Origin: Phyllobates terribilis
Taxonomy: Eukaryota
NCBI RefSeq assembly: GCF_046119375.1
Contig: NW_027362762.1
Location: 130,758,001-130,822,000 of the forward strand
DNA: 64,000 nucleotides
Direction of reading: 5' to 3'
Shown: positions 24,159 through 51,386 of the stretch, piece by piece
Position numbering within the stretch: position 1 is the first letter of the stretch
Layout: each line of letters starts with the position of its first letter
Translations under genes and position numbers: made by a program
The notes under the pieces: model-generated
Database searches by the model: none
What the model was told of the DNA's origin: nothing
What the model saw: the letters and a program-made list of their open reading frames with translations, nothing else

Positions 24159-24481
24159 ATAAATGCCAATACCCCCCCCACACACTCATAAATGCCAATA
24201 CCCCCCCCCACACACTCATAAATGCCAATACCCCCCCCACACACTCATAAATGCCAATACCCCCCCCCACACACTCATAAATGCCAATACCCCCCCCCCA
24301 CACACTCATAAATGCCAATACCCCCCCCCCACACACTCATAAATGCCAATACCCCCCCCCCCACACACTCATAAATGCCAATACCCCCCCCCCCACACAC
24401 TCATAAATGCCAATACCCCCCCCCCCACACACTCATAAATGCCAATACCCCCCCCCCCACACACTCATAAATGCCAATACC

Positions 24482-24522
<41 letters not shown>

Positions 24523-24627
24523 ATAAATGCCAATACCCCCCCCACACACTCATAAATGCCAATACCCCCCCCCACACACTCATAAATGCCAATACCCCCC
24601 CCACACACACTCATAAATGCCAATACC

Positions 24628-24662
<35 letters not shown>

Positions 24663-25280
24663 ATAAATGCCAATACCCCCCCCACACACTCATAAATGCC
24701 AATACCCCCCCCCACACACTCATAAATGCCAATACCCCCCCCACACACTCATAAATGCCAATACCCCCCCCCCACACACTCATAAATGCCAATACCCCCC
24801 CCCCACACACTCATAAATGCCAATACCCCCCCCCCCACACACTCATAAATGCCAATACCCCCCCCCCACACACTCATAAATGCCAATACCCCCCCCCCCA
24901 CACACTCATAAATGCCAATACCCCCCCCCCCACACACTCATAAATGCCAATACCCCCCCCCCCACACACTCATAAATGCCAATACCCCCCCCCCCACACA
25001 CTCATAAATGCCAATACCCCCCCACACACACTCATAAATGCCAATACCCCCCCCACACACACACACACACACACATAAATGCCAATACCCCCCCACACAC
25101 ACACACACTCAAATGCCAATACCCCCCCCACACACACACACTCATAAATGCCAATACCCCCCCCACACACACTCATAAATGCCAATACCCCCCCCCCCCA
25201 CACACACACACACACACACACTCATAAATGCCAATCCCCCCCCCACACACACACACACACACACTCATAAATGCCAATCC
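19322..25280. repeat. Compound minisatellite (TCATAAATGCCAATA Cn (CA)m), ~6 kb, roughly 200 units; contains N gaps at 19505-19632, 19745-19897 and 20070-20200
   Basis: Directly visible: a constant core with variable C-run and CA-run lengths. Unit count is an estimate. Confidence 0.98.
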
Positions 25281-25418
25281 CCGCTTCCCCGTGCCCCTCA
25301 CTTCTGCACAGCACTGGGCAGGCTTGTTGTGTGTAACCCGAGCTCCGCGCTCATTAGCTGATGGAGATGCAGGGATAAATAATGAAGCAGCAGCAGCACA
25401 TGGGGGTCCTGCGGGTAC

Positions 25419-25555
25419 CTGTCCTCCGACACGCTGATCACCCCGTCCTCCTTGGGCACAATCACTGCCATGTTCACCACGTCTTGAGACCCCTCCACCT
25501 TGCTCAGTAATAGAGGCTTGCGGGTGAGGGCTGTGGGGTTGATCTCCGCCGCCAT
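25419..25555 (-). CDS. WDFY2: WDFY2 coding exon 1 (137 nt; [46 protein letters not shown])
   Basis: ATG at 25555 and donor AG|GTACCC. The residues [18 protein letters not shown] and GVISVSEDR fit WDFY2 rather than WDFY1. Confidence 0.96.
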
Positions 25556-27090: not shown

Positions 27091-27100
27091 CATTTTCATG

Positions 27101-27997
27101 CTGTGACCGGTTTCTGACCTGGAGTAGCACCTGGTCCCCCTGCTCGGTTCCTCCCTGGTTCACGGAGTCGACTGAGCCCCGTGCGACCTTTGTCGGATCG
27201 GGTTGATACTTAGTTATGCCCCTCTAGGCATTCCTCGGTTCATGGTACAGTGGGATCACTAATCACGCTCACGCCAGTTTGCCCGGGCATGTGCGTAACA
27301 GAGGTTGGGGCGAAATTGCTCCCCTCTCAGGAAAGAGACCGGAGGTTCGCCGAGGGATTGTGTCTTTAGTGTGGTAAAGCTGACCATTTGATTAAGTATT
27401 GTGAGCTTCGTTTAAGTAAAGAAAAAAAAAAGGTCAGTTACGCCCGTATAGCTTGTTTACGCTCTGCAGGAGTATTTCTTTCTGGGAGTACTACTTTGCA
27501 GGAAAATTTGATTGAATTTCAGGTATTTGTGGATTGTGATTCAACACTTAATGTGATTGATAAAGGGTTTTTGGAAAATCTTAAATTGAAATCCAAACCT
27601 TTGTCATCACCTATTTCTGTGATTGCAATTGATAACACTCCCATGAAATGTATTACTCACAAGGTTGCTGCATTTTCCCTCACTGTCAATGGAGTTCACC
27701 AAGAAATTTTGGACTTGGTTGCATTAGATAATTTACCCTCTCCGGTCGTTCTAGGATTGCCTTGGTTAAAACTGCACAATCCTTTGCTGGACTGGTCTAC
27801 TAATGTGATTAAGTCTTGGAGTCCGAAGTGCTATGATAAATGTTGTAATGGTCGCATTGCGGCTGTGGAAAAAGGGGAATTACCTGTACCTATTCAAGAT
27901 TTTTGGAGGGTTTTTTCAGAGGAGGAGTCGCAAGTTTTACCTCCTCATAAGGACTATGATTGCGTCATTGAGTTTCTTCCTGGAGCTACTCTTCCCA
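27101..27997 (+). mobile_element. Duplicated block: 3' end of LTR-A (27101-27300) plus Gypsy-B gag end, protease and RT start (27301-27997)
   Basis: Near-identical to 36436-37332 (offset 9335). Knuckle remnant CL*CGKADHLIKYC, protease-like FVDCDS, and LPPHKDYDC. Confidence 0.85.
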
Positions 27998-29135
27998 TCT
28001 CCCACCATGCAAGGCCGCAATCTTACCTATCAGGCCAGGCTGCACACTTTGCTCCAGTACCTGCTGTTTGTATGTCTCTTGTCTGCTGGCTTAGGGCGTC
28101 GGCGCTGTTGCTTCCTGATTCTTAAAGCTACAGTGTGCGCAGTCCTAATGCGTCCCCAGCCTATTGCTGTGAGTCACTGGATACTTAAACCCCCTCCACC
28201 CAGTAGGAGGTGCCTGAGCAACACTTTCTTACAGTGTGTTCTGTGCAACTGTGAGTTGCCAGGTCCTGTCCTGACTCTAGTCTGTTTCCGCCACCCTGGG
28301 GGCTGAGTACCCAGGGCCGCTACCTGTACCTGTGACTTCTAGTCAGTTTCTGCCACCCTGGAGGTTGTGTTCCCAGGCTCGTTCCTGTATCTTGTTCCTG
28401 GTTCTGATCCTGTCTGAACAGTGTCCTAGTCCGTTACTTGTTTGTCTCGATGTCTGTATCTTCCCTTTTTCCTGCAGTATCTGAACCTGCACATAACTCC
28501 AACTCGTTGTCTCTGTATTTCTGTTTGTGAGTTTTGTGTCCACTCGCTACTTCATTGTAAGTACCTTGTGTGTATCTGGTTCTGCTCTTTCTGTTTCCCT
28601 GCCTCTGTATCTTACTTCTGTGTTCCAGCTATCTTCTTGTGTTTTCCAGTCTGTTCCATGTGAACAGAGCCCTGTCCTGTCCCTGGTCCCTATCCTGCCT
28701 ACGTTCCTACCTGCCAGTACCAGCCTGTCTGCATGTCAGCCGTGCCTGCCTGTGCCCACCTGTCTGCATGCCAGCCGTGCCTGCCAGTGCCCACCTGTCT
28801 GCATACCAGCTGTGCCTGTCAATATCCACCTGTCTGCATACCAGCCGTGCCTGCTAGTACCCACCTGTCAATATGCCAGCCTAACCTGCCTGTTCCTGCA
28901 TTCCCCGGTGTGGGTCAACAGCTGTAACCGGGGTCTGACCTGAAGTAGCACCTGGTCCCTCTGCTCGGTTCCTCCTTTGTTCACGGAGTCGACTGAGCCG
29001 CCGTGCGACCTTGGTCGGATCGGGTTGATACTTAGTTACGCTCCTCCAGGCACTCCTCGGTTCATGGTACAGTGGGATCACTAATCATGCTCACGCCAGT
29101 CAGTCTGGGCACGAGCGTAACAGTTTGCTCAGGCC

Positions 29136-31245
29136 ATGTTTCCCGTTGAGCCCCACGGCCCTTCGCTCTCAGAGACATTTGAATCCTTGTCTGGCGAATA
29201 CGTGCACCAAGGAAAAAATTTTTTCGCAAGCTGAGGTCCAGGCGATTTACGCACCAGTCCAAATGGATCTATCAGCACTCGTTCCTGCGGATCCACCACA
29301 GTACTATGGGGATCCAAAACAAAGCCGTGCATTTGTGGAGCAATGCATGCTGCATTTCAAATTCTATGCTCATTATTTTCCTACCGATCGGGTTAAAGTA
29401 GCATTTCTGATGTCCTACCTAGCAGGTGATGCCTTGAAATGGATCACCCCCCTATGGGAAGCATGGGATCCTATCGTCTCTGACCTGCAGGCCTTCCTGG
29501 TAGCCTTTCTAATGGTCTTCAATGACCCTAATCCTGAAGCTTCTGCTAAAGCTTCCTTTCCCATATCCTGGAGCAGCCCCGATGGGTGATGTGTGTAGGT
29601 AGCCTATCAGTTCTCCAGCCTGAAGAGACTGCTGCCCACACAGAATCTACACAGGATGACAATGCTCCACAGAATACTTCCCTTCCCAACCTCAAGAGGC
29701 AGTCCAGACGTGCAAGGTGTAGAGGTAAACCGTCACGCCAGGTTCTGTCCTCCCAAAGACCTCCTGTTCCCCCGCCTGTAGAGGCAGCTATCCGCACAGA
29801 ATCCATGAAGGATGACTATGTTCGTCAGGCAAAGCAGAGGCCAGAACTCAGTCACAAAATCGGATTGCGGTCCCGCTGCGGTTGTTTGGGACCCCCTGAC
29901 GGTCTTTGTCCAGCGAAGGTTAGAGAATCCCAAGACATTAGGCCTGTAGGAGAGGCTGCCCTTGGCGTTAGTGTTTCCTCTCCACAGATGACCATGACTG
30001 TCTCCGTGGCAAGTGAAGGCCTCGGATTAACCGGAAGTTTCGGGCTTAAAGCCTTGAAGAGTCGGTGTCTGATTCCCGTCCGACAACCCCAGAAGCCGGT
30101 TTGGGCGTTGTCAGCGGAAGGACGAGCCCTACTCAGAAACAGTCAAAATATGTCTGTACAAATTAAGCTCCAGATTGGAGCATTACACATGAAGAAGTTC
30201 ACATTCCAGGTGCTGTCTGGTTTACCCACAGGTCGTCCAGAGCCGAGAAATCTACTGCCCGCTCAGGTCTGAAGATCCTGCATGGTGTTTCCTGGGGGAC
30301 TGCTGAGGTGTAAGGGGTGTCCAGTCCCCATATCTTCAGGACAGTCAGCAGTTTCTTCTTCTTCTTCACCAGATCTGCTAGTCGCTGACTCGCTGTGCGC
30401 TGAAGTCTCCGAAGGAAGGGAAGCGGAGGCATTGTCCCCACACAGTCTCGACGATTGTACCAATGATCTGGCTTTAGGCACCGCCCCGCTTCGCAGACGT
30501 GTCATCTCAGAAACCAGACTGAAGTTGGTCCCTAAGCAAGGATCCTCCATCTCTAACAAATCTGGCAATAAGTCCATCAAGGCGGTGGCTATCTCCAAGT
30601 CTCTGCACCCCTCCAACCAGGCGGGGGACCTCCAATAGCCTCCTGAATCCTCCAGGGTGCTATCTGATAACAAATGGAGAGACTTTTCTGCACCCTGTAA
30701 CTGGTACACCGCCCACTTCATCCAGTAAGCTTGGCAAAGTGTACGTCAAGGCGGTGGTTACCCCCGAGTCTCTACACCCCTCCAACCAGGCGGAGGACTT
30801 CCAGTTGTCTCCTGAATTCCCCGGGGTGCTTCCTGATAACAAATGGAGAGAGACTTTTCTGCACCCTGTACCTGGTACTTCGCCCACTTCATCCAGTAAG
30901 CTTGGCAAAGTGAACGTCAAAGCGGTGGTTAACCCCGAGTCTCTGTACCTCTCCAACCTGGTGGAGGACCTCCAGTTGTCCCGTGAATCCTTTAGGGTAC
31001 TACCCGATATTAACAAGTGGAGAGAGACTTTCCTGTGTCCTGTTCTTGGTACTTCACCCACTTCCTCTGTTGCTGAGGATGGATCGATGGGAGGAAGCAT
31101 CCTAGTCACCAAGATGGTGAGACCAGTTTTGTTCCCTCTAGTGGACAGAAGAGGTAATCTTCTTGAAGAGAAGGATCGGCCTCCAAATTCTCTGCAGGAA
31201 ATACTTACTGGCTTGAAGAAGAGGGGACGTAAAGGGGGGTGGTAC
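29136..31245 (+). pseudogene. Element A internal ORF remnants, copy 1: Gag N-terminal half, degenerate knuckle/protease-like region, 3x171-bp repeat, chromodomain remnant; no RT, RH or IN
   Basis: PPQYYGDPKQSRAFVEQCMLHF...DRVKVAFLMSYLAGDALKWITPLWE resembles the gag at 45305-46255. ILVTKMVR..LVDRRG..EE...GLKKRGRKGG aligns with the chromodomain end of the pol at 46767-49628. Confidence 0.7.
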
Positions 31246-32422
31246 TGTAACATCCCTGGCGGCGTGCTTGCATGGCTTATCATCTCCCATCATGCAAGAC
31301 CGCAATCTTACCTATCAGGCCAGGCTGCACACTTTGCTCCAGTACCTGCTGTTTGTATGTCTCTGGTCTGCTGGCTTAGGGCGTCGGCGCTGTTGCTTCC
31401 TGATTCTTAAAACTACAGTGTGCGCAGTCCTAATGCGTCCCCAGCCTATTGCTGTGAGTCACTGGATACTTAAACCCCCTCCACCCAGTAGGAGGTGCCT
31501 AAACAACACTTTCTTACAGTGTGTTCTGTGCAACTATGAGTTGCCAGGTCCTGTCCTGACTCTAGTCTGTTTCCGCCAACCTGGGGGCTGAGTACCCAGG
31601 GCCGCTACCTGTACCTGTGACTTCTAGTCAGTTTCTGCCACCCTGGAGGTTGTGTTCCCAGGCTCGTTCCTGTATCTTGTTCCTGGTTCTGATCCTGTCT
31701 GAACAGTGTCCTAGTCCGTTACTTGTTTGTCTCGATGTCTGTATCTTCCCTTTTTCCTGCAGTATCTGAACCTGCACATAACTCCAACTCGTTGTCTCTG
31801 TACTTCTATTTGTGAGTTTTGTGTCCACTCTCTACTTCATTGTAAGTACCTTGTGTGTATCTGGTTCTGCTCTTTCTGTTTCCCTGCCTCTGTATCTTAC
31901 TCCTGTTTTCCAGCTATCTTCTTGTGTTTTCCAGTCTGTTCCATGTGAACAGAGCCCTGTCCTGTCCCTGGTCCCTATCCTGCCTACGTTCCTACCTGCC
32001 AATACCCGCCTGTCTGCATGTCAGCCGTGCCTGCCTGTGCCCACCTGTCTGCATGCCAACCATGCCTGCCAGTGCCCACCTGTCTGCATACCAGCTGTGC
32101 CTGTCAATATCCACCTGTCTGCATACCAGCCGTGCCTGCTAGTACCCACCTGTCAATATGCCAGTCTAACCTGCCTGTTCCTGCATTCCCCGGTGTGGGT
32201 CAACAGCTGTAACCGGGGTCTGACCTGAAGTAGCACCTGGTCCCTCTGCTCTCGTTCCGCCCCTTGTTCACGGAGTCGACTGAGCCGCCGTGCGACCTTG
32301 GTCGGATCGGGTTGATACTTAGTTACGCTCCTCCAGGCACTCCTCGGTTCATGGTACAGTGGGATCACTAATCATGCTCACACCAGTCAGTCTGGGCACG
32401 AGCGTAACAGTTTGCTCAGGCC

Positions 32423-34532
32423 ATGTTTCCCGTTGAGCCCCACGGCCCTTCGCTCTCAGAGACATTTGAATCCTTGTCTGGCGAATACGTGCACCAAGGA
32501 AAAAATTTTTTCGCAAGCTGAGGTCCAGGCGATTTACGCACCAGTCCAAATGGATCTATCAGCACTCGTTCCTGCGGATCCACCACGGTACTATGGGGAT
32601 CCAAAACAAAGCCGTGCATTTGTGGAGCAATGCATGCTGCATTTCAAATTCTATGCTCATTATTTTCCTACCGATCGGGTTAAAGTAGCATTTCTGATGT
32701 CCTACCAAGCAGGTGATGCCTTGAAATGGATCACCCCCCTATGGGAAGCATGGGATCCTATTGTCTCTGACCTGCAGGCCTTCCTGGTGGCCTTTCTAAT
32801 GGTCTTCAATGACCCTAATCCTGAAGCTTCTGCTAAAGCTTCCTTTCCCATATCCTGGAGCAGCCCCGATGGGTGATGTGTGTAGGTAGCCTATCAGTTC
32901 TCCAGCCTGAAGAGACTGCTGCCCACACAGAATCCACACAGGATGACAATGCTCCACAGAATACTTCCCTTCCCAACCTCAAGAGGCAGTCCAGACGTGC
33001 AATGCGTAGAGGTAAACCGTCACGCCAGGTTCTGTCCTCCCAAAGACCTCCTGTTCCCCGGCCTGTAGAGGCAGCTATCCGCACAGAATCCATGAAGGAT
33101 GACTATGTTCGTCAGGCAAAGCAGAGGCCAGAACTCAGTCACAAAATCGGATTGCGGTCCCGCTGCGGTTGTTTGGGACCCCCTGACGGTCTTTGTCCAG
33201 CGAAGGTTAGAGAATCCCAAGACATTAGGCCTGTAGGAGAGGCTGCCCTTGGCGTTAGTGTTTCCTCTCCACAGATGACCATGACTGTCTCCGTGGCAAG
33301 TGAAGGCCTCGGATTAACCGGAAGTTTCGGGCTTAAAGCCTTGAAGAGTCGGTGTCTGATTCCCGTCCGACAACCCCAGAAGCCGGTTTGGGCGTTGTCA
33401 GCGGAAGGACGAGCCCTACTCAGAAACAGTCAAAATATGTCTGTACAAATTAAGCTCCAGATTGGAGCATTACACATGAAGAAGTTCACATTCCAGGTGC
33501 TGTCTGGTTTACCCACAGGTCGTCCAGAGCCGAGAAATCTACTGCCCGCTCAGGTCTGAAGATCCTGCATGGTGTTTCCTGGGGGACTGCTGAGGTGTAA
33601 GGGGTGTCCAGTCCCCATATCTTCAGGACAGTCAGCAGTTTCTTCTTCTTCTTCACCAGATCTGCTAGTCGCTGACTCGCTGTGCGCTGAAGTCTCCGAA
33701 GGAAGGGAAGCAGAGGCATTGTCCCCACACAGTCTCGACGATTGTACCAATGATCTGGCTTTAGGCACCGCCCCGCTTCGCAGACGTGTCATCTCAGAAA
33801 CCAGACTGAAGTTGGTCCCTAAGCAAGGATCCTCCATCTCTAACAAATCTGGCAATAAGTCCATCAAGGCGGTGGCTATCTCCAAGTCTCTGCACCCCTC
33901 CAACCAGGCGGGGGACCTCCAATAGCCTCCTGAATCCTCCAGGGTGCTATCTGATAACAAATGGAGAGACTTTTCTGCACCCTGTAACTGGTACACCGCC
34001 CACTTCATCCAGTAAGCTTGGCAAAGTGTACGTCAAGGCGGTGGTTACCCCCGAGTCTCTACACCCCTCCAACCAGGCGGAGGACTTCCAGTTGTCTCCT
34101 GAATTCCCCGGGGTGCTTCCTGATAACAAATGGAGAGAGACTTTTCTGCACCCTGTACCTGGTACTTCGCCCACTTCATCCAGTAAGCTTGGCAAAGTGA
34201 ACGTCAAAGCGGTGGTTAACCCCGAGTCTCTGTACCTCTCCAACCTGGTGGAGGACCTCCAGTTGTCCCGTGAATCCTTTGGGGTACTACCCGATATTAA
34301 CAAGTGGAGAGAGACTTTCCTGTGTCCTGTTCTTGGTACTTCACCCACTTCCTCTGTTGCTGAGGATGTATCGATGGGAGGAAGCATCCTAGTCACCAAG
34401 ATGGTGAGACCAGTTTTGTTCCCTCTAGTGGACAGAAGAGGTAATCTTCTTGAAGAGAAGGATCGGCCTCCAAATTCTCTGCAGGAAATACTTACTGGCT
34501 TGAAGAAGAGGGGACGTAAAGGGGGGTGGTAC
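32423..34532 (+). pseudogene. Element A internal ORF remnants, copy 2
   Basis: Near-identical to copy 1, with the same stops and frameshifts. Confidence 0.7.
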
Positions 34533-35499
34533 TGTAACATCCCTGGCGGCGTGCTTGCATGGCTTACCATCTCCCACCATGCAAGACCGCAATCTTACCT
34601 ATCAGGCCAGGCTGCACACTTTGCTCCAGTACCTGCTGTTTGTATGTCTCTGGTCTGCTGGCTTAGGGCGTCGGCGCTGTTGCTTCCTGATTCTTAAAAC
34701 TACAGTGTGCGCAGTCCTAATGCGTCCCCAGCCTATTGCTGTGAGTCACTGGATACTTAAACCCCCTCCACCCAGTAGGAGGTGCCTAAACAACACTTTC
34801 TTACAGTGTGTTCTGTGCAACTATGAGTTGCCAGGTCCTGTCCTGACTCTAGTCTGTTTCCGCCACCCTGGGGGCTGAGTACCCAGGGCCGCTACCTGTA
34901 TCTCTGACTTCTAGTCTGTTTCCGCCACCCTGGGGGCTGAGTACCCAGGGCCGCTAACTGTACCTGTGACTTCTAGTCAGTTTCTGCCACCCTGGGGGCT
35001 GTGTTCCCAGGCTCGTTCCTGTATCTTGTTCCTGGTTCTGATCCTGTCTGAACAGTGTCCTAGTCCTTTACTTGTTTGTTCCGATGTCTGTATCTTCCCT
35101 TTTTCCTGCAGTATCTGAACCTGTACCTAACTCCAACTCGTTGTCTCTGTACTTCTGTTTGTGAGTTTTGTGTCCACTCGCTACTTCATTGTAAGTACCT
35201 TGTGTGTATCTGGTTCTGCTCTTTCTGTTTCCCTGCCTCTGTATCTTACTCCTGTGTTCCAGCTATCTTCTTGTGTTTTCCAGTCTGTTCCATGTGAACA
35301 GAGTCCTGTCCTGTCCCTGGTCCCTATCCTGCCTACGTTCCTACCTGCCACTACCTGCCTGTCTGCATGTCATCCGTGCCTGCCTATGCCCACCTGTCTG
35401 CATGCCAGCCGTGCCTGCCAGTGCCCACCTGTCTGCATACCAGCTGTGCCTGTCAATATCCACCTGTCTGCATACCAGCCGTGCCTGCTAGTACCCACA

Positions 35500-36175
35500 A
35501 GCTTTGCTCTGCTTGTTCACCGCACCTGCGGTTTTGCTCTGCTTAGCTTGTTCACCGCATCTGCGGGTTTTGCTCTGCTTCGCGTGTTTACCTCATCTGC
35601 GGTTTTCCTCTGCTTTGCTTGTTCACCGCATCTGCGGTTTTTCTCTGCTTTGCTTGTTCACCGCATCTGCGGGTTTTGCTCTGATTGGCTTGTTTACCGC
35701 ATCTGCGGTTTTTCTCTGCTTTGCTTGTTCACCGCATCTGCGGGTTTTGCTCTGATTGGCTTGTTTACCGCATCTGCGGTTTTGCTCTGCTTTGCTTGTT
35801 CACCGCATCTGCGGGTTTTGCTCTGCTTTGCTTGTTCACCGCATCTGCGGTTTTGCTCTGCTTTGCTTGTTCACCACATCTGTGGGTTTTGCTCTGATTT
35901 GCTTGTTCACCGCATCTGCGGTTTTGCTCTGCTTTGCTTGTTCACCGCATCTGCGGGTTTTGCTCTGCTTTGCTTGTTCACCACATCTGCAGTTTTGCTC
36001 TGCTTTGCTTGTTCACCGCATCTGCAGGCTTTGCTCTGCTCTGCTTATTTACCGCACCTGCGGTTTTGCTGTGCTCCGCTTGTTCACCGCATCTGCGGGT
36101 TTTGCTTTGCTCTGATTATCTACCGCACCTGTGGGTTTTGCTCCGCTCTGCTTGTTTACCGCACCTGCGGCTCTG
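35500..36175. repeat. 35/36-bp tandem array (gctctgctttgcttgttcaccgcatctgcg(g)gtttt, ~19 units) inside LTR3
   Basis: Directly visible. Flanked by a ~190-bp direct duplication of LTR sequence (~35310-35498 and ~36200-36375). Absent from LTR1 and LTR2. Confidence 0.95.
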
Positions 36176-36635
36176 TTCCTGTATCCCAGTCTGTACTGGT
36201 CCCTAACCTGCCTACGTTCCTACCTGCCAGTACCCGCCTATCTGCATGTCAGCCGTGCCTGCCTGTGCCCACCTGTCTACATGCCAGCCGTGCCTGCCAG
36301 TGCCCACCTGTCTGCATACCAGTTGTGCCTGTCAATATCCACCTGTCTGCATACCAGCCGTGCCTGCTAGTACCCACCTGTCAATATGCCAGTCTAACCT
36401 GCCTGTTCCTGCATTCCCCGGTGTGGGTCAACAGCTGTGACCGGGGTCTGACCTGGAGTAGCACCTGGTCCCTCTGCTCGGTTCTTCCCTGGTTCACGGA
36501 GTCGACTGAGCCGCCGTGCGACCTTGGTCGGATCGGGTGGATACTGAGTTATGCACCACCAGGCATTCCTCGGTTCATGGTACAGTGGGATCACTAATCA
36601 CGCTCACGCCAGTCTGCCCGGGCGTGTACGTAACA

Positions 36636-39600
36636 GAGGTTGGGGTGAAATTGCTCCCCTCTCAGGAAAGAGACCGGAGGTTCGCCGAGGGATTGTGTCT
36701 TTAGTGTGGTAAAGCTGACCATTTGATTAAGTATTGTGAGCTTCGTTTAAGTAAAGAAAAAAAAAAGGTCAGCTACGCCCGTATAGCTTGTTTACGCTCT
36801 GCAGGAGTATTTCTTTCTGGGAGTACTACTTTGCAGGAAAATTTGATTGAATTTCAAGTATTTGTGGATTGTGATTCAACACTTAATGTGATTGATAAAG
36901 GGTTTTTGAAAAATCTTAAATTGAAATCCAAACCTTTGTCATCACCTATTTCTGTGATTGCAATTGATAACACTCCCATGAAATGTATTACTCACAAGGT
37001 TGCTGCATTTCCCCTCACTGTCAATGGAGTTCACCAAGAAATTTTGGACTTGGTTGCATTAGATAATTTACCATCTCCGGTCGTTCTAGGATTGCCTTGG
37101 TTAAAACTGCACAATCCTTTGCTGGACTGGTCTACTAATGTGATTAAGTCTTGGAGTCCGAAGTGCTATGATAAATGTTGTAATGGTCGCATTGCGGCTG
37201 TGGAAAAAGGGGAATTACCTGTACCTATTCAAGATTTTTGGATGTTTTTTTCAGAGGAGGAGTCGCAAGTTTTACCTCCTCATGAGGACTATGATTGCGC
37301 CATTGAGTTTATTCCTGGAGCTACTCTTCCCAAGCGTCGCTTGTTTAACCCCTTTACCCCCGAGGGTGGTTTGCACGTTAATGACCAGGCCAATTTTTAC
37401 AATTCTGACCACTGTCACTTTATGAGGTAATTACTCTGGAACGCTTCAACGGATCCGCCTGATTCTGAGTTTGTTTTTTCTTGACATATTGTACTTCATG
37501 ATTGTGGTAAAATTTCTGCGATATCACTTGCGTTTATTTGTGAAAAAAGCAGAAATTTGGCGAAAATTTTGAAAATTTTGCAATTTTCAAAATTTGAATT
37601 TTTATGCTCTTAAATCAGAGAGATATGTCACACAAAATAGTTAATACATAACATTTCCCACATGTCTACTTTACATCAGCACAATTTTGGAACCAAAATT
37701 TTTTTTGTTAGGGAGCTATAAGGGTTAAAAGTTGACCAGCGATTTCTCATTTTTCCAACAAAATTTACAAAACCACTTTTTTAGGGACCACATCACATTT
37801 GAAGTCACTTTGAGAGGTCTTTATGACAGAAAATACCCAAAAGTGACACCATTCTAAAAACTGCACCCCTCAAGGTGCTCAAAACCACATTCATGAACTT
37901 TATTAACCCTTCAGGTGCTTCACAGGAATTTTTGGAATGTGGAAGAAAAAAATTAACATTTAACTTTTTTCACAAAAATGTTACTTTAGACCCAATTTTT
38001 TTTATTTTCGCAGGGGTAACAAGAAAAAATGGACCCCAAAATTTGAAAAAGTGGAAAAAAAAACACTTTTTCATTTTTACGAATCAATTTGTGAAGCACT
38101 TGGGGGTTCCAAGTGCTCACTATGCATCTAGATAGGTGCCTTGGGTGGTTTAGTTTCCAAAATGGGGTCACTTGTGGGGGAGCTCCAATGTTTAGGCACA
38201 CAGGGGCTCTCCAAACGTGACATGGTTCCAATTTGTTAGCGGACACCATGTCGCGTTTGGAGAGCCCCTGTGTGCCTAAACATTGGAGCTCTCCCACAAG
38301 TGACCCCATTTTGGAAACTAGACCACCCAAGGCACCTATCTAGATGCATAGTGAGCACTTGGAACCCCCAGGTGCTTCACAAATTGATTTGTAAAAATGA
38401 AAAAGTTTTTTTTTTGCACTTTTTCATTTTTACGAATCAATTTGTGAAGCACCTGGGGGTTCCAAGTGCTCACTATGCATCTAGATAGGTGTCTTGGGGG
38501 ATCTAGTTTCCAAAATGGGGTCACTTGTGGGGGAACTCGAATGTTTAGGCACACAGGTGCTCTCCAAACACACCATGGTGTCCGCTAACCATTTGAGCCG
38601 ATTTTCCATTCAATTTGTTATCGGACACCATGTTGCTTTTGGAGAGCACCTGGTGGTCTAGTTTCCAAAATGGGGTCACTTGTGGGAGAGCTCCAATGTT
38701 TAGGCACACAGGGGCTCTCCAAACGCGACATGGTGTCCGCTAACAAATTGGAACCATGTCGCGTTTGGAGAGCCCCTGTGTGCCTAAACATTGGAGCTCC
38801 CCCACAAGTGACCCCATTTTGGAAACTAGACCACCCAAGGCACCTATCTAGATGCATAGTGAGCACTTGGAACCCTCAGGTGCTTCACAAATTGATTCGT
38901 AAAAATGAAAAAGTGGAAAAAAAATATTTTTTCATTTTTCCGAATCAATTTGTGAAGCACCTAGGGGTTCCAAGTGCTCACTATGCATCTAGATAGGTGC
39001 CTTTGGGGGTCTAGTTTCCAAAATGGGGTCACTTGTGGGGGGTTTCCACTGTTTAGGCACATCAGGGGCTCTCCAAACACAACATGGCGTCAGCTAATTA
39101 TTCAAGCAAATTTTACAATCAAAAAGTCAAATGGCGCTCCTTCCCTTCCGAGCCCTGCCATGCGCCCAAACAGTGTTTTTTCCCCACATATGGGATATCT
39201 GCGTTTCCAGGGGAAATTGCACAACAAATTTTGGGGTCCATTTTTTCTTGTTACCCCTGCGAAAATAAAAAAAAATTGGGTCTAAAGTAACATTTTTGTG
39301 AAAAAAGTTAAATGTTTATTTTTTTCTTCCACATTCCAAAAATTCCTGTGAAGCACCTGAAGGGTCAATAAAGTTCTTGAATGTGGTTTTGAGCACTTGA
39401 GGGGTGCAGTTTTTAGAATGGTGTCACTTTTGCGTATTTTCTGTCATAAAGACCTCTCAAAGTGACTTCAAATGTGATGTGGTCCCTAAAAAAATGGTTT
39501 TGTAAATTTTGTTGGAAAAATGAGAAATCGCTGGTCAACTTTTAACCCTTATAGCTCCCTAACAAAAAAAAATTTTGGTTCCAAAATTGTGCTGATGTAA

Positions 39601-40713
39601 AGTAAACATGTGGAAAATGTTATGTATTAAGTATTTTGTGTGACATATCTCTCTGATTTAAGGGCATAAAAATTCAAATTTTGAAAATTGCTAAATTTTC
39701 AAAATTTTCGCCAAATTTCCATTTTTTTCACAAATAAACGCAAATGATATCGCAGAAATTTTACCACAATCATGAAGTACAATATGTCACGAAAAAACAG
39801 TCTCAGAATCAGGGGGATCCGTTGAAGCGTTCCAGAGTAATTACCTCATAAAGTGACAGTGGTCAGAATTGTAAAAATTGGCCTGGTCATTAACGTGCAA
39901 ACCACCATCGGGGGTAAAGGGGCTAAAGTGCTTCAGGTTGTTAACCCGTTTGCTGTTAGGTTGTATGTCCCTACTTCCTGGAAGATTAATCCTGTGTTTC
40001 ATGTTTCTTTGTTGAAAAAGGCTGATGTATCAGATAAGGATGCCACTGTCTCAGTTTCTCCTGTGGTGGAAGACGGCGAATATGAAATTTCTCATATCTT
40101 GAATTCTAGATGGCATAGAGGGAGATTACAGTATCTAGTCTCCTGGAAAGGTTTCGGTCACGAAGACAACTCCTGGGTAAGGACGGATGATGTCTCTGTT
40201 CCTAGTCTTGTTAAAGCTTTCCACAAGAGGTTTCCGGATAGGCCTGGGCCTGGAGGATCCTCATAAAAGAGGAGGTACTGTTAGAACCCTCCTGTTTGTT
40301 TTTTCCATCTTGTATTTTGCGGTCACGTGACCATCTGCCTTTATATTCCAGCTCCGCCCTTTTGGCTGTGCTGGACTTCAGTGTTTGACTGTTTCTCTAG
40401 CCAGGTGCTTCTGTGCCTTACTATGTCAGTTCGTTTTGTCCTTCTGGGACCTCTAGTACTTGTTTGTCTGTTTGTCTTTTTGTGTTCTGCAACAACTTCT
40501 CTGTTTAGGAGGTGTCCCATTTTTGTCCCAGCCTTTAGTCCTTTTAGGGACCCCTCCCCTTATGCTATAGGTCTTCGTTCAGACTAGCCGAGGACTAAGG
40601 TGGGTCTGTTCGCTAGGAACAGGCAGCCCGCTACATTGTAGGGATTCAGCTTAGTTTTACTTTAGGGACAGTTTCCCCTTATCATTCCTTAGTACATGTT
40701 GCAGATCATAACA
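36636..40713 (+). mobile_element. Gypsy/chromovirus element B remnant: gag end, protease and RT start (36636-37348); piggyBac-type insert; post-integrase and chromodomain (39923-40266); PPT; 3' LTR (40279-40713)
   Basis: [26 protein letters not shown] before the insert. KVLQVVNPFAVRL...EYEISHILNSRWHRGRLQYLVSWKGFGHEDNSW after it. LTR TGTTAG...ATAACA (435 bp) follows AAAAGAGGAGGTAC. Confidence 0.85.
37349..39922. mobile_element. Non-autonomous piggyBac-type foldback element (2574 bp)
   Basis: TTAA|CCCCTTTACCCCC...GGGGGTAAAGGGG|CTAA. Terminal inverted arms of ~700 bp. Core of alternating direct and inverted blocks with the motif AAAATGGGGTCACTTGTGGG. No transposase. Confidence 0.85.
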
Positions 40714-41044
40714 AAAACATCACCAGAACCATCAAAAGTGCATGAATACAGCACCGGAACAACGATCACTACATGAGTATGTCCCCAGAATCGGAATATG
40801 TCACCAGAACCACCATCAGTACATGTATACATTATCAGAACCACCATCAGTTTTGTGCAAGCTGTATATGTTGCATGTCGGATGCAAAAACTATCAAATG
40901 TATCCCTTTATCTATAAATGGGTCTGTTTATTTTCCATTAGATTATCTGCCAAATGCTGGACACCTTAATTGAAACGAAACAGCCCCATTATAGTTAAGC
41001 TATATTAGTTTCCATTACTATTATTGGGTTTTACATTAAAAAAT

Positions 41045-42054
41045 TGTAACAGGTCTGGGAGGCGGAACCTCTGAGCAACTATACAAGGGGGCGGTCCTTG
41101 TAAGGAAGCGGGTGGCTCCCAGGGAAGACGGGCAGGTAGTCACGGCAAGTGACAGGGACAGTCTCTGGGTAGAAGGGCAGGTAGTCACGGCAAGTGACAG
41201 GGACAGTCTCTGGGTAGAAGGGCAGGTAGTCACGGCAAGTGACAGGGACAGTCTCTGAGTAGAAGGACGGGTACTCACGGCAAGTGACAGGGACAGTCTC
41301 TGGGTAGAAGGACAGCAGGCAGGTGGCTGGTGAGCGCTCCCAGGTGAGCGGGCGAGAGTCTTTGGACAGGCAGGTGGTCACGGCAAGTGACGGCAGAGCC
41401 TCCAGGTAGGCTAGCAGACAGGTAGTAGGTGAGCGCTCCCAGGTGAGCAGGCAAGAGTCTCTGGACAGGCAGGTGGTCACGGCAAGTGACGGCAGAGCCT
41501 CCAGGTAGGCTAGCAGACAGGTAGCAGGTGAGCGCTCCCAGGTGAGCAGGCATGAGTCTCTGGACAGGCAGGTGGTCACGGCAAGTGACGGCGGAGCCTC
41601 CAGGTAGGCTAGCAGGCAGGTAGCAGATGAGCGCTCCCAGGTGAGCGGGCAGGCTGGTCCATAGACAGACTGACAGGTGTCGGAAGGCAGACCGTCGGAC
41701 CGCAGGCTTGCAAGCAGGTAAACGGATATCAGGCAGGTATCAAGCAGGAATCTGGCAGGTGACTGGCAGGTAACAAGCAGGAATCTGTGAAGGCTTTGCA
41801 ACAACATTGCTCGGGCACCTCCATTTTGGAGGAGGTGCCTTATATATGGTGAAGTCCTCAGGCCATTGGCCGGGGACTCCTTAGGACGGCGCACGCGGCC
41901 CCTTTAAGAGAAGGGGAGCGCGCGCGCCCTAAGCACCGTGGCCGGGAAGCAGCGCGCGCTGCCAGCAGGGCGGGAGGAAGACGCCGGGCACGGAGCGGAG
42001 AGGTGAGGGGAACAGCGTCCCTGCCTAGCAGGAGGCAGGGACGCTGACGCTACA
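41045..42054 (-). repeat. Element C 3' LTR (1010 bp) with 4x45-bp and 3x99-bp internal repeats
   Basis: Sense strand TGTAGCGTC...GTTACA. TATATAA near 41840-41846. Confidence 0.9.
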
Positions 42055-45000
42055 GTACCTCCCCCTTTAGGCCCCCCCTTTTTTAGGCCAGAGAGAAATT
42101 TATCAAGGATGAGTGGGGCATGGATGTTCTCCCGAGGCTCCCACGTTCTCTCCTCAGGACCAAACCCCTTCCAATCTACCAGAAAAAAGGTTTTTCCTCT
42201 TACCCTTTTGGTGGCCAGAATGTTCTCTACCTCAAACTCGTTCTCAGCGGAAACCGGAGCAGGAGGCGTACCTGTAGACTTGGAAAAAGAGTTAAGTACC
42301 ACGGGTTTGAGGAGAGATACATGGAAGGAGTTAGGGATCCGTAGGTTGGCCGGGAGTTTCAATTTATAGGCCACCGGATTGATCTGTTTGATAACTTCCA
42401 GTGGGCCGATGAACCGAGGCCCTAACTTGTAGGAAGGAACCTTGAGCCGGACATACTTGGACGAGAGCCAGACTTTATCTCCAGGACGGAATTGTGGAGG
42501 ATCCAGGCGTTTTTTGTCAGCGTGTTTTTTCATCCGCTCGGACGACTGAAGGAGTGCGGATCGGGTACTCTCCCAAATGGAGGAGAATTCGCTAACGAGA
42601 GATTCCGCAGCCGGATTGTCCACCGAGGTGGAGACGGGAAACGGGATCCGAGGATGCTGACCGAAGACTACAAAAAACGGGGATTTGGAGGAAGATTCGC
42701 TCTCGTGATTATTGTAAGAGAACTCGGCCCATGGTAGGAGATCCACCCAGTCCGAATGGTGGGCGTTAACGAAGTGCCGGAGGTAACTGGTCAGGTTCTG
42801 ATTGATCCGCTCCACTTGACCATTGGACTGTGGATGGTAAGCGGAGGAGAAGTCCAGAGTGACGTCAAGCAACTTACATGTGGCTCTCCAGAAGCGTGAG
42901 GTGAACTGAACACCCACAATCTGACACAATGTGGAGGGGCAGGCCATGGAGACGGAAGATGTGGCGGATAAAGTCTTTAGCGAGTTCGGGTGCAGACAGG
43001 AGGCCCGGCAGGGGAATGAAGTGCGCCATCTTGGAAAAGCGATCAGCGACCACCCAAATGACCGTACAACCGGCAGAGACAGGGAGATCCGTTATAAAGT
43101 CCATAGCTATATGCTGCCACGGGACAGCAGGTACTGGAAGAGGAAGGAAGCGACCGGCTGGCAGGTGTCTCGGAACTTTGTTGCGGGCGCAAGACACACA
43201 GGCAGAAACAAAGTCTATTACATCCTTGTGCAGGGTAGGCCACCAGTAATGCCGGGTAATGAGCTGGAGGGTCTTTTTCTGACCGGCGTGACCAGCTAGC
43301 TTAGACGAGTGACCCCAGTGTAGGACCCTCCTCCGATCAGGTACAGTTACGAACGTCTTACCGGGAGGGAGACGATTTAGATTCACGGGGGCCACTTGCA
43401 TTACTCTGGCGGGATCAATGATGTGCTTAATGTCCTCCTCTAGATCAGATACCAGGAAGGATCGGGACAAGGCGTCAGCTTTGATGTTTTTGTCTGCCGG
43501 GCGAAAATGAAGAACAAAATCAAAGCGAGCAAAAAACAAGGACCACCGGGCTTGGTGCGGGTTAAGTCTCTGGGCGCTCTGAAGGTAAGCCAAGTTCTTG
43601 TGGTCCGTGTAAATTATTACCGGGTGAAGAGCCCCCTCGAGCAGGTAACGCCACTCCTCCAGTGCCAGCTTAATGGCTAACAATTCTCGGTCTCCAATAG
43701 AATAATTGCGCTCAGAAGAGGAGAAGAGTTTGGAGAAAAAAACGCAGGTTACCATTCTTCCGGAAGATGACTTTTGGGTAAGTACCGCCCCGGCTCCTGA
43801 GGAGGAAGCGTCAACTTCTAGGAAGAATTGTTTGTTGCCGTCCGGACGATGCAGCACCGGGGCGGAGGAGAAAGCCTGTTTTAAGGAAAGAAAGGCCTCC
43901 GCAGCTTTGGGCGGCCATCTTCTGGGATTAGTGCCCTTACGGGTGAGCGCAGAGATAGGGGCAGTCCGGGAAGAGAAGTGCGGTATGAAGAGGCGGTAAT
44001 AGTTGGCGAAGCCCAGGAACCGCTGAATAGCCTTCAACCCCTCTGGTCGGGGCAACTTCTGGATGGCAGACAGTTTCTCAGGATCCTTTTGTAGGCCGGT
44101 CTGAGAGATTATGTAGCCCAGAAATGGAAGAGAGGTCTGTTCAAAGATGCACTTCTCATATTTAGCGTAGAGGTGATTCTGCCTGAGCCTGAGCAGGACC
44201 TGACGAACATCCCTCCGGTGAGTAGGAAGGTCCGGAGAGAAGACCAAGATGTCGTCCAGGTACACCACCACGCAGGAGTAGAGAAGGTCACGGAAGATGT
44301 CATTGACCAACTCTTGAAAGACGGCAGGAGCGTTACAGAGACCGAAGGGCATTACAAGGTACTCATAGTGGCCGTCCCAGGTGTTGAATGCCGTCTTCCA
44401 CTCATCCCCCTGACAGATACGGACCAGGTTATACGCCCCACGGAGATCTAGTTTGGTGATGATTCTAGCCCCCCTCAGACGGTCAAATAATTCAGGAATG
44501 AGCGGGAGGGGGTATTTATTCTTCACTGTAATCTGGTTAAGGCCTCTATAATCTATACATAGACGGAGTGAGCCGTCCTTCTTTTTGACGAAGAAGAAGC
44601 CTGCTCCCGCCGGGGAGGTAGACTTCCGGATAAATCCCCGGGCCAGATTCTCCTCAATATATTCTGACATGGACCGGGTCTCTGCAGCGGACAAAGGGTA
44701 GATACGCCCACGGGGAGGAGTAGAGCCGGGTATCAGGTCGATTGGGCAGTCGTATGGTCTATGAGGGGGTAATGTCTCTGCTTCTTTTTTATTGAAGACA
44801 TCCGCATAAGACCAATAGGGAACGGTAGACCGGGTAGATTGACTGGGGTAGGAGAAGGACGAGCAGGATGAACGGGAACTAGACAAGTCTTATGGCAGTC
44901 CTGTCCCCAGCGAAGGACTTCTCCGGTCTGCCAGTCAAGCACGGGTGCATGTTTCTGGAGCCAAGGTAGGCCTAGCAAGAGTGCGTGAGAGAGTCCAGGC

Positions 45001-45254
45001 AGAACATGAAAGGAGATGCTCTCAGAATGCAGCATTCCCACCTGTAGAGTTAGAGATTCGGTGATGAGTTGGATGGGATGTGGTAAGAGGCCCCCATCCA
45101 CGGCGGCGACAGATAAAGGTACGGCCAGAGGTTTGGTGGGAATACGGTATTTCTCTACCAGGGATTGAGAGATGAGATTTCCAGCAGCTCCAGAGTCAAG
45201 TTGAGCCAGTTCAAAATAGCGGTTCTCTCCGCAGATGATAGAGACTGACAGCAT
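42055..45254 (-). pseudogene. Element C pol, left copy (PR-RT-RH-IN-chromodomain) with frameshifts at PR/RT (~44820) and in IN (~42915)
   Basis: LDSGA protease, YLDD RT, DAS RNase H, HX4H...C2 and DDE integrase, and chromodomain, spread over ORFs 44733-45254, 42874-44886 and 41904-42947. Confidence 0.95.
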
Positions 45255-45304
45255 CAGGGATGGAGAGGGTTTACTTTTGTCTAGGGCGACCTCTCTGAGC
45301 GATC

Positions 45305-46255
45305 CTAGACACAGGCGTTTCCCGACCTCTCTGGGCAGGAACGGATCTGGTGCTCCTTACTGCCACAGTAGAAGCAGCTCCCCTCGGCACGGCGTAAGTC
45401 TTGACGGGTTTTGACCATCTTGGTCTGGTCGACCTGCATAGGCTCAGGTGAGTGTGCCTGGGGAGTAACGGAGGGAGTGACGGGTTTCTGGAAGGTAGGA
45501 GCTAGACGTGGAAACCTCCTCTCACGGGTGACCTCTTTGGCGCGCTCCTGGAACCGGATGTCAATCCGGGTGGCAAGTGTTATTAAGTCGTCGAGAGTGG
45601 TAGGAATGTCCCGACCGGCGAGTTCATCTTTAATACGGCCGGACAGACCCTCCCGGAAGACAGACACCAGGGCGTCGTTATCCCAGGCCTGCTCCGAAGC
45701 AAGTGTACGGAACCGTATGGCATATTGGCCTACGGTGAGATTTCCTTGATGGAGGCGTAGCAGAGACGATGCGGATGAGGTCTTCCGTCCGGGTTCGTCG
45801 AAGACTTTCCGGAAAGCCGTGAGAAAGGCTGGCAGGTCGGACACCAGGGGGTCTCCTCTCTCCCATAGAGGATTTAGCCAAGCCAGAGCCTCCCCCGTGA
45901 GGTGGGACATGATAAAGGCTACTTTGGACCGGTCAGAGATAAACTGGTGGGACAAAAGTTCAAAGTGCAGGGTGCACTGGTTTATGAAGCCCCGAGCTTG
46001 AGCGGAGTCACCTCCGAAGCGAGGAGGTGCAGAAAGCCGGGGTCCGGGGCAGGATACCATGGTATTGGTGGGCAGCGGCGCTGCCGGGTTGCGAGTCATG
46101 ACACTAGCGGTGGTAGCTGGTGGAGCAGTCAGAGTGTCCAGGCGAGAGTTGACATTCCGCAGGTGACTCAGGATGGACTCCTGTTGGGACCTCTGACGGG
46201 ACAGTTCATGACATAAATCCGAGAGCGAGGGAGCTTGGGTGCCACCGGGTTCCAT
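45305..46255 (-). CDS. Element C Gag (316 aa, open) with CCHC zinc knuckle
   Basis: PEG10/Sushi-type capsid motifs (FGGDSAQARGFINQC, AWLNPLWE, LHQGNLTVGQYAIRF) and CFYCGSKEHQIRSC. Confidence 0.92.
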   Translation of the reverse strand: MEPGGTQAPSLSDLCHELSRQRSQQESILSHLRNVNSRLDTLTAPPATTASVMTRNPAAPLPTNTMVSCPGPRLSAPPRFGGDSAQARGFINQCTLHFELLSHQFISDRSKVAFIMSHLTGEALAWLNPLWERGDPLVSDLPAFLTAFRKVFDEPGRKTSSASSLLRLHQGNLTVGQYAIRFRTLASEQAWDNDALVSVFREGLSGRIKDELAGRDIPTTLDDLITLATRIDIRFQERAKEVTRERRFPRLAPTFQKPVTPSVTPQAHSPEPMQVDQTKMVKTRQDLRRAEGSCFYCGSKEHQIRSCPERSGNACV

Positions 46256-46268
46256 TGCCCGAGCAAAC

Positions 46269-46796
46269 TGTAACGGGTCTGGGAGGCGGAACCTCTGAGC
46301 AACTATACAAGGGGGCGGTCCTTGTAAGGAAGCGGGTGGCTCCCAGGGAAGACGGGCAGGTAGTCACGGCAAGTGACAGGGACAGTCTCTGGGCAGAAGG
46401 GCAGGTAGTCACGGCAAGTGACAGGGACAGTCTCTGGGTAGAAGGGCAGGTAGTCACGGCAAGTGACAGGGACAGTCTCTGAGTAGAAGGACGGGTACTC
46501 ACGACAAGTGACAGGGACAGTCTCTGGGTAGAAGGACAGCAGGCAACATTGCTCGGGCACCTCCATTTTGGAGGAGGTGCCTTATATATGGTGAAGTCCT
46601 CCGGCCATTGGCCGGGGACTCCTTAGGACGGCGCACGCGGCCCCTTTAAGAGAAGGGGAGCGCGCGCGCCCTAAGCACCGTGGCCGGGAAGCAGCGCGCG
46701 CTGCCAGCAGGGCGGGAGGAAGACGACGGACACGGAGCGGAGAGGTGAGGGGAACAGCGTCCCTGCCTAGCAGGAGGCAGGGACGCTGACGCTACA
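46269..46796 (-). repeat. Element C central LTR (528 bp; ~480-bp internal deletion)
   Basis: Junction agcaggca|acattgctc removes the 99-bp repeat block. Confidence 0.9.
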
Positions 46797-49628: not shown

Positions 49629-50391
49629 GTCTTATGGCAGTCCTGTCCCCAGCGAAGGACTTCTCCGGTCTGCCAGTCAAGCACGGGTGCATGTTTCTGG
49701 AGCCAAGGTAGGCCTAGCAAGAGTGCGTGAGAGAGTCCAGGCAGAACATGAAAGGAGATGCTCTCAGAATGCAGCATTCCCACCTGTAGAGTTAGAGATT
49801 CGGTGATGAGTTGGATGGGATGTGGTAAGAGGCCCCCATCCACGGCGGCGACAGATAAAGGTACGGCCAGAGGTTTGGTGGGAATACGGTATTTCTCTAC
49901 CAGGGATTGAGAGATGAGATTTCCAGCAGCTCCAGAGTCAAGTTGAGCCAGTTCAAAATAGCGGTTCTCTCCGCAGATGATAGAGACTGACAGCATCAGG
50001 GATGGAGAGGGTTTACTTTTGTCTAGGGCGACCTCTCTGAGCGATCCTAGACACAGGCGTTTCCCGACCTCTCTGGGCAGGAACGGATCTGGTGCTCCTT
50101 ACTGCCACAGTAGAAGCAGCTCCCCTCGGCACGGCGTAAGTCTTGACGGGTTTTGACCATCTTGGTCTGGTCGACCTGCATAGGCTCAGGTGAGTGTGCC
50201 TGGGGAGTAACGGAGGGAGTGACGGGTTTCTGGAAGGTAGGAGCTAGACATGGAAACCTCCTCTCACGGGTGACCTCTTTGGCGCGCTCCTGGAACCGGA
50301 TGTCAATCCGGGTGGCAAGTGTTATTAAGTCGTCGAGAGTGGTAGGAATGTCCCGACCGGCGAGTTCATCTTTAATACGGCCGGACAGACC

Positions 50392-51386
50392 CTATACAAG
50401 GGGGCGGTCCTTGTAAGGAAGCGGGTGGCTCTCAGGGAAGACGGGCAGGTAGTCACGGCAAGTGACAGGGACAGTCTCTGGGCAGAAGGGCAGGTAGTCA
50501 CGGCAAGTGACAGGGACAGTCTCTGGGTAGAAGGGCAGGTAGTCACGGCAAGTGACAGGGACAGTCTCTGAGTAGAAGGACGGGTACTCACGACAAGTGA
50601 CAGGGACAGTCTCTGGGTAGAAGGACAGCAGGCAGGTGGCTGGTGAGCGCTCCCAGATGAGCGGGCGAGAGTCTTTGGACAGGCAGGTGGTCACGGCAAG
50701 TGACGGCAGAGCCTCCAGGTAGGCTAGCAGGCATGTAGCAGGTGAGCGCTCCCAGGTGAGCAGGCAAGAGTCTCTGGACAGGCAGGTGGTCACGGCAAGT
50801 GACGGCAGAGCCTCCAGGTAGGCTAGCAGACAGGTAGCAGGTGAGCACTCCCAGGTGAGCAGGCAAGAGTCTCTGGACAGGCAGGTGGTCACGGCAAGTG
50901 ACGGCGGAGCCTCCAGGTAGGCTAGCAGGCAGGTAGCAGATGAGCGCTCCCAGGTGAGCGGGCAGACTGGTCCATAGACAGACTGACAGGTGTCGGAAGG
51001 CAGACCGTCGGACCGCAGGCTTGCAAGCAGGTAAACGGATATCAGGCAGGTATCAAGCAGGAATCTGGCAGGTGACTGGCAGGTAACAGGCAACGGGACC
51101 TGAGGGCTGAAGCAGAGTGAAGGCTTTGCAACAACATTGCTCGGGCACCTCCATTTTGGAGGAGGTGCCTTATATATGGTGAAGTCCTCCGGCCATTGGC
51201 CGGGGACTCCTTAGGACGGCGCGCGTGGCCCCTTTAAGAGAGGGGGAGCGCGCGCGCGCCCTAAGCACCGTGGCCGGGAAGCAGCGCGCGCTGCCAGCCG
51301 GGCGGGAGGAAGACGCCGGGCATGGAGCGGAGAGGTGAGGGGAACAGCGTCCCTGCCTAGCAGGAGGCAGGGACGCCGACGCTACA
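50392..51386 (-). repeat. Element C 5' LTR; U5 end, PBS and ~600 bp of gag deleted
   Basis: Junction gacagaccct|atacaagggg (CT microhomology) fuses mid-gag to the LTR. Confidence 0.9.

Follow-up and report, generated by a model that had tools for sequence, protein, structure and literature searches.

How was reverse transcription started in two long terminal repeat (LTR) retrotransposons, element C on the minus strand (41045–51386) and element A on the plus strand (27996–36635), that lie in a 64,000-nt stretch of Phyllobates terribilis DNA (contig NW_027362762.1 of assembly GCF_046119375.1, forward-strand positions 130,758,001 to 130,822,000; this whole stretch is the window below, and positions are counted from its first letter)? 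In Tf1 the RNA's initial 11 bases anneal to the primer-binding site, and RNase H cleaves between bases 11 and 12 (PMC7175516). Self-priming is a common feature of Tf1/sushi elements (PMC10085805), and the passages on it in PMC4600332 and PMC6317226, which cite Butler et al. 2001, implicate it from fungi to vertebrates. The original prediction for this locus was that a Tf1-type self-primer and its site are common to a decayed autonomous element (C) and a relative without pol (A). The data on both elements, together with six of seven further families, support this, and we put at about 0.85 the probability that C and A were Tf1/sushi-group chromoviruses in which reverse transcription was started without a transfer RNA (tRNA).

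Predicted self-primer and binding site in elements C and A

Both elements are tandems of the form LTR-internal-LTR-internal-LTR. Among the C LTRs, only the middle one (46269–46796, minus strand, defined by its LTR ends and self-BLAST) has a primer-binding site behind it. Its TATA box (TATATAA, 46582–46588) lies 29 nt, counted from the first T, from base 1 of the predicted self-primer, TGCCCGAGCAA (46549–46559), which would form the first 11 nt of R, and between the two stands a hairpin motif, CCTCC-N8-GGAGG (46560–46577, with arms at 46577–46573 and 46564–46560). The LTR closes with a terminal CA (46270–46269), and after a GT spacer comes the site, TTGCTCGGGCA (46256–46266), which is the exact reverse complement of the 11-mer, starts 2 nt past the CA, adjoins the gag ATG (46255) and does not begin with TGG. 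An identical 11-nt primer segment is found in the right-hand LTR (51147–51137) and in the left-hand LTR (41817–41807), so that it is present in all three.

Element A has the same layout on the plus strand. Its LTR1 (27996–29122, defined by LTR ends) carries a TATA-like TACTTAA (28182–28188) 29 nt upstream of primer base 1, the CCTCC-N8-GGAGG motif (28193–28210, with arms at 28193–28197 and 28206–28210) and the predicted self-primer, TGCCTGAGCAA (28211–28221). Past the terminal CA (29121–29122) and a GT spacer, that is 2 nt after the LTR end, lies the site, TTGCTCAGGC (29125–29134), which complements primer bases 2–11, base 1 facing a C and staying unpaired; the ATG of a gag-derived frame follows 1 nt further on. 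Position 5 of the primer and its partner in the site are both changed between A and C with pairing kept, as the single covarying pair of the original prediction required, and every motif that it named in the two elements was found in its place. An identical copy of the A site lies behind LTR2 (32412–32421). The primer segments of LTR2 (31496–31506) and LTR3 (34783–34793) carry the same two substitutions, and because of these the longest complement to the site behind the LTR is only 6 nt, a length reached by 2880 of 3000 shuffles and thus at chance level. The sequences are therefore consistent with the proposal that only LTR1 of A could prime, its segment being intact and those of LTR2 and LTR3 altered. 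In LTR1 itself roughly 35 nt are missing from the start of U3, and element A lacks enzymes of its own.

To assess the match, each LTR was searched for its longest exact complement to the 20 nt that follow it, and the search was repeated on 2000 dinucleotide-preserving shuffles of that LTR. The 11-nt complement of C was reached by none of the 2000 shuffles and the 10-nt complement of A by 8; when the run was made with a 24-nt window, the counts were 4/3000 for C and 15/3000 for A.

The complement in further families

The relatives that a search with C gag recovered, at 30–56% identity, came from frogs (Ranitomeya, Pyxicephalus, Mixophyes, Dendrobates) and from fishes, which by itself suggests an anuran host. 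The test set consisted of A, C and seven further families with related gags, drawn from frogs, fishes and sequencing-run assemblies and only from loci with an LTR; Ranitomeya and Mixophyes (the closest frog relatives) and one ENA contig were left out. L001 and L002, with 54% identity the closest gag relatives among the fetched loci, end inside the LTR and hence yield no primer match; their site, ATCAAGGAGCC, lies 2 nt after the ...GTAACA end.

A self-complement of 9–11 nt was found in six of the seven further families, and with A and C in eight of nine. It measured 11 nt in L004 (1/2000 shuffles) and L006 (16/2000), 10 nt in L005 from Oryzias latipes (6/2000), whose LTRs are identical and flanked by a GGATC target duplication, and 9 nt in L003 (41/2000), L010 (29/2000) and L011 (31/2000). 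The L004 LTR was read across the 30-nt terminal overlap of its contig, and as primer and site both fall within the contiguous first ~420 nt, the result is independent of the join. In all positive families the site begins 1–2 nt past the terminal CA of the LTR and the complement begins 28–32 nt downstream of a TATA-like box, counted from its first base (in L005 and L010 at the A of a CA dinucleotide), while the letters of primer and site vary from family to family. Two related fish-type families from the same assembly (GCA_977066305.1), L010 (9681–10060) and L011 (9593–9990), have different bases at two positions of the primer, and in each case the site carries the corresponding change that keeps the pairing.

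Single 9-nt matches, each reached by 1.5–2% of shuffles, could by themselves be chance matches in repeat-rich LTRs. Fisher combination with one value per lineage over seven independent lineages, the negative one (L009) included, gave p = 5.6e-9 with positional agreement left unused, and the position is the same in every positive family, so that chance is a most improbable explanation for the set.

These data bear equally on the possibility that the sites were bound by an internal part or a half of a host tRNA, a mode found in some copia-type elements, and matched the LTR only incidentally. Half-tRNA priming is known in other groups of LTR retrotransposons (PMC6317226). The sites of the eight positive families begin with TTG, ACG, AAC or AGA and none with TGG, and therefore none can pair with the CCA 3′ end of a tRNA; each of these different sites matches its own LTR at the same place relative to the TATA box, and compensatory changes occur in two related pairs (A with C and L010 with L011). 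Priming by a piece of tRNA thus appears very unlikely, though less so than chance, and a primer supplied by the LTR itself is the reading that we prefer.

Kinship of A and C and the promoter hairpin

The LTRs of A and C had been described as otherwise dissimilar, and this part of the original prediction held only in part. In the 125 nt of U3 that precede the primer the two share 70% identity (shuffle maximum 63%), the primer agrees at 10 of 11 positions (shuffle mean 51%, maximum 82%), the spacer plus site at 11 of 13 (mean 50%, maximum 85%) and the polypurine region, taken as the 60 nt before the 3′ LTR, at 72% (maximum 67%), while the gag fragments show 53% identity across 89 residues. The next 100 nt after the primer (+12 to +111) agree at 53%, for which the shuffle mean is 56%. 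The similarity of A and C therefore spans the promoter, ends right after primer base 11 and resumes at the site and the polypurine tract; beyond base 11 the rest of R and U5 is made up of tandem repeats specific to each family. Such a sharp boundary fits a functional unit of 11 nt, and with regard to the point of RNase H cleavage it is suggestive only. Since U3, the polypurine region and gag are all similar, A and C are related families, and their shared primer and site are accordingly inherited rather than acquired independently.

The CCTCC-8 nt-GGAGG cassette, noted earlier as common to both LTRs, is indeed present in A and C. The fold of the C hairpin has −8.2 kcal/mol, with 0 of 500 shuffles as stable, and that of A LTR1 has −7.4 kcal/mol, with 1.2% of shuffles as stable. 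The cassette is not a group-wide feature: the hairpin is weak in L003, where a fraction of 0.086 of the shuffles is equally stable, and at the same place in L004, L005, L006 and L010 it is no better than shuffles. The hairpin is thus common by descent to the A/C lineage and no part of the design of the whole group.

Folding of the predicted 5′ untranslated region

We folded the entire predicted 5′ untranslated region (5′ UTR), from base 1 of the primer segment to 30 nt past the site. The primer is paired with the site in the minimum-energy folds of C, A, L003 and L004, with a pair probability above 0.9 across most of the duplex; in the full fold of C the primer-site pair probabilities are 0.8–0.99. 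Several families also form short helices of 3–5 bp which stack on the duplex and involve ACAGT at the LTR end. The Rfam search found no family matching 26000–52000.

Keeping in mind that in these folds the duplex closes the entire predicted 5′ UTR, and that the site adjoins the gag ATG in C, A and L003, the pairing may alternatively be viewed as a long-range stem that regulates translation, packaging or dimerisation, with priming done by something else; pairing between U5 and the AUG region occurs in retroviruses. The paired segment, however, lies exactly at the position of a minus-strand primer, 1–2 nt past the CA of the LTR, in eight families, in which there is no alternative candidate site and none that starts with TGG. 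Moreover, the ATG is 2 to more than 25 nt further on in L005, L006, L010 and L011, and the linkage of site and ATG is therefore not constant. We consider a purely regulatory stem unlikely, if somewhat less so than priming by a tRNA piece, and hold to the reading of the duplex as primer and site.

Structure and coding content of elements C and A

Element C was delimited by self-BLAST, by its LTR ends and flanks and by Pfam domains. A 5-bp target duplication, ATTTT (51391–51387 and 41044–41040), bounds the entire tandem block, and the LTR termini read TGTAGC...GTTACA. Besides the middle LTR, self-BLAST and LTR ends identify the right-hand LTR (50392–51386, the 5′-most on the minus strand), whose 3′ end is missing, and the left-hand LTR (41045–42054, the 3′-most). 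The middle LTR is shorter than the other two because it lacks the block of 99-nt tandem repeats. R and U5 of the C LTRs consist largely of 45-nt and 99-nt tandem repeats (41079–41750, 46303–46545, 50392–51063), and the LTRs measure 528 versus about 1010 nt, the repeat copy number varying among the LTRs of one element. A polypurine tract with a TAC spacer, recognised from the LTR flanks, is located directly upstream of the left LTR (42055–42084), and another copy closely precedes the middle LTR.

The left unit of C contains an open gag frame of 316 codons (45305–46255, minus strand) with Retrotrans_gag, Ty3_capsid and DUF4939 (RTL/LDOC type) domains and a CCHC knuckle, the closest solved relative being the PEG10 capsid. 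It is followed by a broken pol (41904–45254, minus strand; assigned by Pfam and by comparison with relatives) with protease, reverse transcriptase (RT), RNase H, integrase, SH3_Tf2-1 and chromodomain. Across C, the Pfam matches follow the Ty3/gypsy gene order of gag, protease, RT, RNase H and integrase, and the integrase C-terminus carries PF00385 (Chromo) and PF24626 (SH3_Tf2-1) in C as well as in a third element, B. Ty3 Gag-Pol is the best match to C pol among solved structures (E = 8e-135). The coding region of the right unit (46767–50391, minus strand) was found by self-BLAST, Pfam and comparison with relatives, and a single deletion in this unit took the LTR end, the primer-binding site and the N-terminal part of gag. 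Relative to the uninterrupted pol of two relatives, there are two frame changes in the left unit and one in the right, and no in-frame stops occur within the matches of C pol to these relatives. On account of its domain content and its closest solved matches, we class element C as a decayed Ty3/gypsy chromovirus with a sushi-type gag.

Element A, outlined by self-BLAST and Pfam, has two internal regions of 2.1 kb each (29123–31245 and 32410–34532, plus strand; self-comparison and Pfam), which retain an N-terminal piece of gag, tandem repeats, a chromodomain remnant and a polypurine tract. Protease, RT and integrase were all undetected in the internal region by Pfam and by comparison with relatives. 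The gag-derived frame (29136–29589, plus strand) of about 150 codons has a DUF4939 match only in Pfam, and the RTL/LDOC-type domain PF16297 (RTL1-8/LDOC) is found both in C gag and in this fragment. LTR2 (31246–32409) is full length, with TGTAAC...GTAACA termini, and LTR3 (34533–36635) is enlarged by a tandem array, as judged from its ends and from self-comparison; the arrays of A are made of 35–36-nt units in LTR3 (35424–36209) and of ~170-nt repeats in the internal region (30508–31009). Because pol was lost while the C-like cis signals (U3 promoter, primer, site, 5′ gag and polypurine tract) were kept, A is best read as a non-autonomous relative of C that would have depended on the enzymes of a C-like element, supplied in trans.

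The tandems of A and C both consist of three LTRs with a shared middle LTR, and in C this arrangement within a single target duplication points to unequal LTR-LTR exchange after one insertion. On either side of the A array lies an 898-nt block (27100–27997 and 36434–37332; 97% identical), in which the last ~200 nt of an A-like LTR are fused to a protease-plus-RT-start fragment of another chromovirus; it contains neither a primer-binding site nor gag, and its first copy abuts A LTR1 where the first ~35 nt of that LTR are missing. These flanking blocks suggest either that elements recombined or that a larger segment was duplicated at a period of ~9335 nt. Over its last ~200 nt, A LTR3 is closer to the LTR fragment at 27100–27301 than to LTR1 or LTR2. 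A sequence like the C site, preceded by GT and with 1 base different, occurs about 15 nt before the LTR end in this fragment and in LTR3 (27270–27301 and 36605–36636), a place at which LTR1 and LTR2 differ.

Element B and other contents of the window

Of element B only the 3′ end is present (39907–40713, plus strand), comprising the integrase C-terminus with SH3_Tf2-1, the chromodomain, a polypurine tract and an LTR that spans 40279 to about 40713. The LTR has a TATA-like TTTATATT at 40340, and the original prediction placed the primer at ~40369–40378; with only this 3′ end to search, no primer-binding site, no second LTR and no complement of the predicted primer were found anywhere in the window.

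A 2.6-kb insert (37344–39927) separates the RT-start fragment from the integrase end of B. Its terminal inverted repeats are 704 nt long and 96.7% identical, and there are more inverted repeats inside it. The insert ends in CCC...GGG, is flanked by TTAA on the left and CTAA on the right, and resembles a non-autonomous element of piggyBac type. A long pyrimidine-rich satellite with a period of ~30–32 nt and extreme strand asymmetry (GC skew ~−0.88) occupies 20200–25500 and is preceded by four runs of N, one at 8461–8652 and three within 19505–20200. Further transposon remains, at 11376–12125 (minus), 54989–56497 (plus) and 57161–58966 (plus), comprise two Tc1/mariner-type transposase frames (DDE_3, HTH_Tnp_Tc3_2) and one DUF4371 frame. 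The window is repeat-dense throughout, and none of the frames scanned was recognised as a host gene.

Discussion

Based on the position and recurrence of the complement and on the domain content of the elements, we propose that the LTR promoter, with a TATA box ~29 nt upstream, would begin the RNA on the T of TGCC(C/T)GAGCAA or right beside it, and that the first ~11 nt would fold back on the complementary site, 2 nt past the 5′ LTR and beside the gag start codon. The element's own RNase H would then cut behind the paired segment, and the released 3′ end would prime minus-strand DNA; all copies in the window are decayed, and in A these enzymes would have to come from a C-like partner. In retroviruses, plus-strand synthesis copies the tRNA primer into the site. 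By analogy, the self-primer might be copied in each cycle into the plus-strand copy of its site, in which case a primer change that still primes would spread to the site without a second mutation, a possible reason for the joint drift of primer and site.

Several points count against this proposal or limit its weight. The kinship of A and C reduces their common module to one observation and a single compensatory change, and one of the seven further families (one of nine tested when A and C are counted), L009 from Kryptolebias, has no complement of at least 7 nt. The first bases of the RNA are placed by TATA spacing alone, and the TATA-like TACTTAA of A is a poor one. In the full fold of L005, primer and site pair with a probability of only ~0.3. 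Tf1 RNA forms a 'pretzel' of three duplexes, namely the primer-site duplex and two flanking ones in which sequence adjacent to the site pairs with the LTR downstream of the primer (PMC10085805); the two extra duplexes were not above shuffles in energy in our families, except in L010. Finally, tRNA scans of the window and of eight loci gave no tRNA gene for comparison, and priming by an internal tRNA piece keeps a small probability.

The self-priming chromoviruses in which the mechanism was demonstrated are Tf1 and Tf2 of Schizosaccharomyces pombe and Tj1, Tosmo and Tcry1 of other fission yeasts. Like these, C has a chromodomain-bearing Ty3/gypsy pol, and C and A have a site just past the CA of the 5′ LTR that complements ~11 nt at the predicted RNA start (PMC7175516, PMC10085805, PMC4600332), and the A and C sites are not complementary to a tRNA 3′ end, judged by the absent TGG. 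Unlike them, C and A have a vertebrate host and a gag of RTL/LDOC (sushi) type, their flanking pretzel duplexes are at chance level, and they are known from sequence alone. By its gag and pol domains C belongs to the same clade as the vertebrate Tf1/sushi elements (sushi-ichi of pufferfish and relatives), and its closest gag relatives are from frogs and fishes; the C and A families differ by at least 45% in gag from all relatives fetched. Self-priming of vertebrate sushi-type elements has already been proposed (Butler et al. 2001, J Mol Evol 52:260, as cited in PMC10085805 and PMC6317226).

Element A resembles non-autonomous elements of LARD and TRIM type in keeping LTRs, site, polypurine tract and a gag fragment without protease, RT or integrase, and differs from them in that it keeps a self-primer instead of a tRNA site and that its cis signals are homologous to those of a neighbouring family of autonomous type. 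C gag matches the capsid of PEG10, and PF16297 links C and A gag to PEG10 and the other domesticated sushi-type gag genes of mammals (RTL/SIRH); those are host genes, whereas the gags in the window belong to transposon copies that come with LTRs, a target duplication and pol.

It is conceivable, though we regard it as doubtful, that in the A/C lineage the promoter-hairpin-primer block and the matching site act as a portable specificity code, as the similarity of A and C ends exactly at base 11 and the predicted start is directly preceded by a hairpin specific to the lineage. The hairpin might set the transcript start with single-base precision, as self-priming would demand, or the primer and site letters shared with C might let the pol-less A be copied by C-type enzymes. 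If this were so, a host-parasite pairing between retrotransposon families would be legible from 11 nucleotides.

The self-priming design was already known, vertebrates included, so that C and A add to a known group and leave the understanding of the mechanism unchanged; a literature search on amphibian or non-autonomous Tf1/sushi elements gave nothing relevant. Programs that find LTR elements by looking only for tRNA-type primer sites would miss or mis-score such families, which a check for complementarity between the LTR and the sequence behind it would catch. Cumulatively, two anuran-type families, one of them non-autonomous, would join the vertebrate elements with a Tf1-type self-primer, with comparative support from eight of nine families in which the letters vary, the geometry is constant and compensatory changes occur in two related pairs; the non-autonomous partner and the boundary at base 11 are modest additions to what is known of the group.

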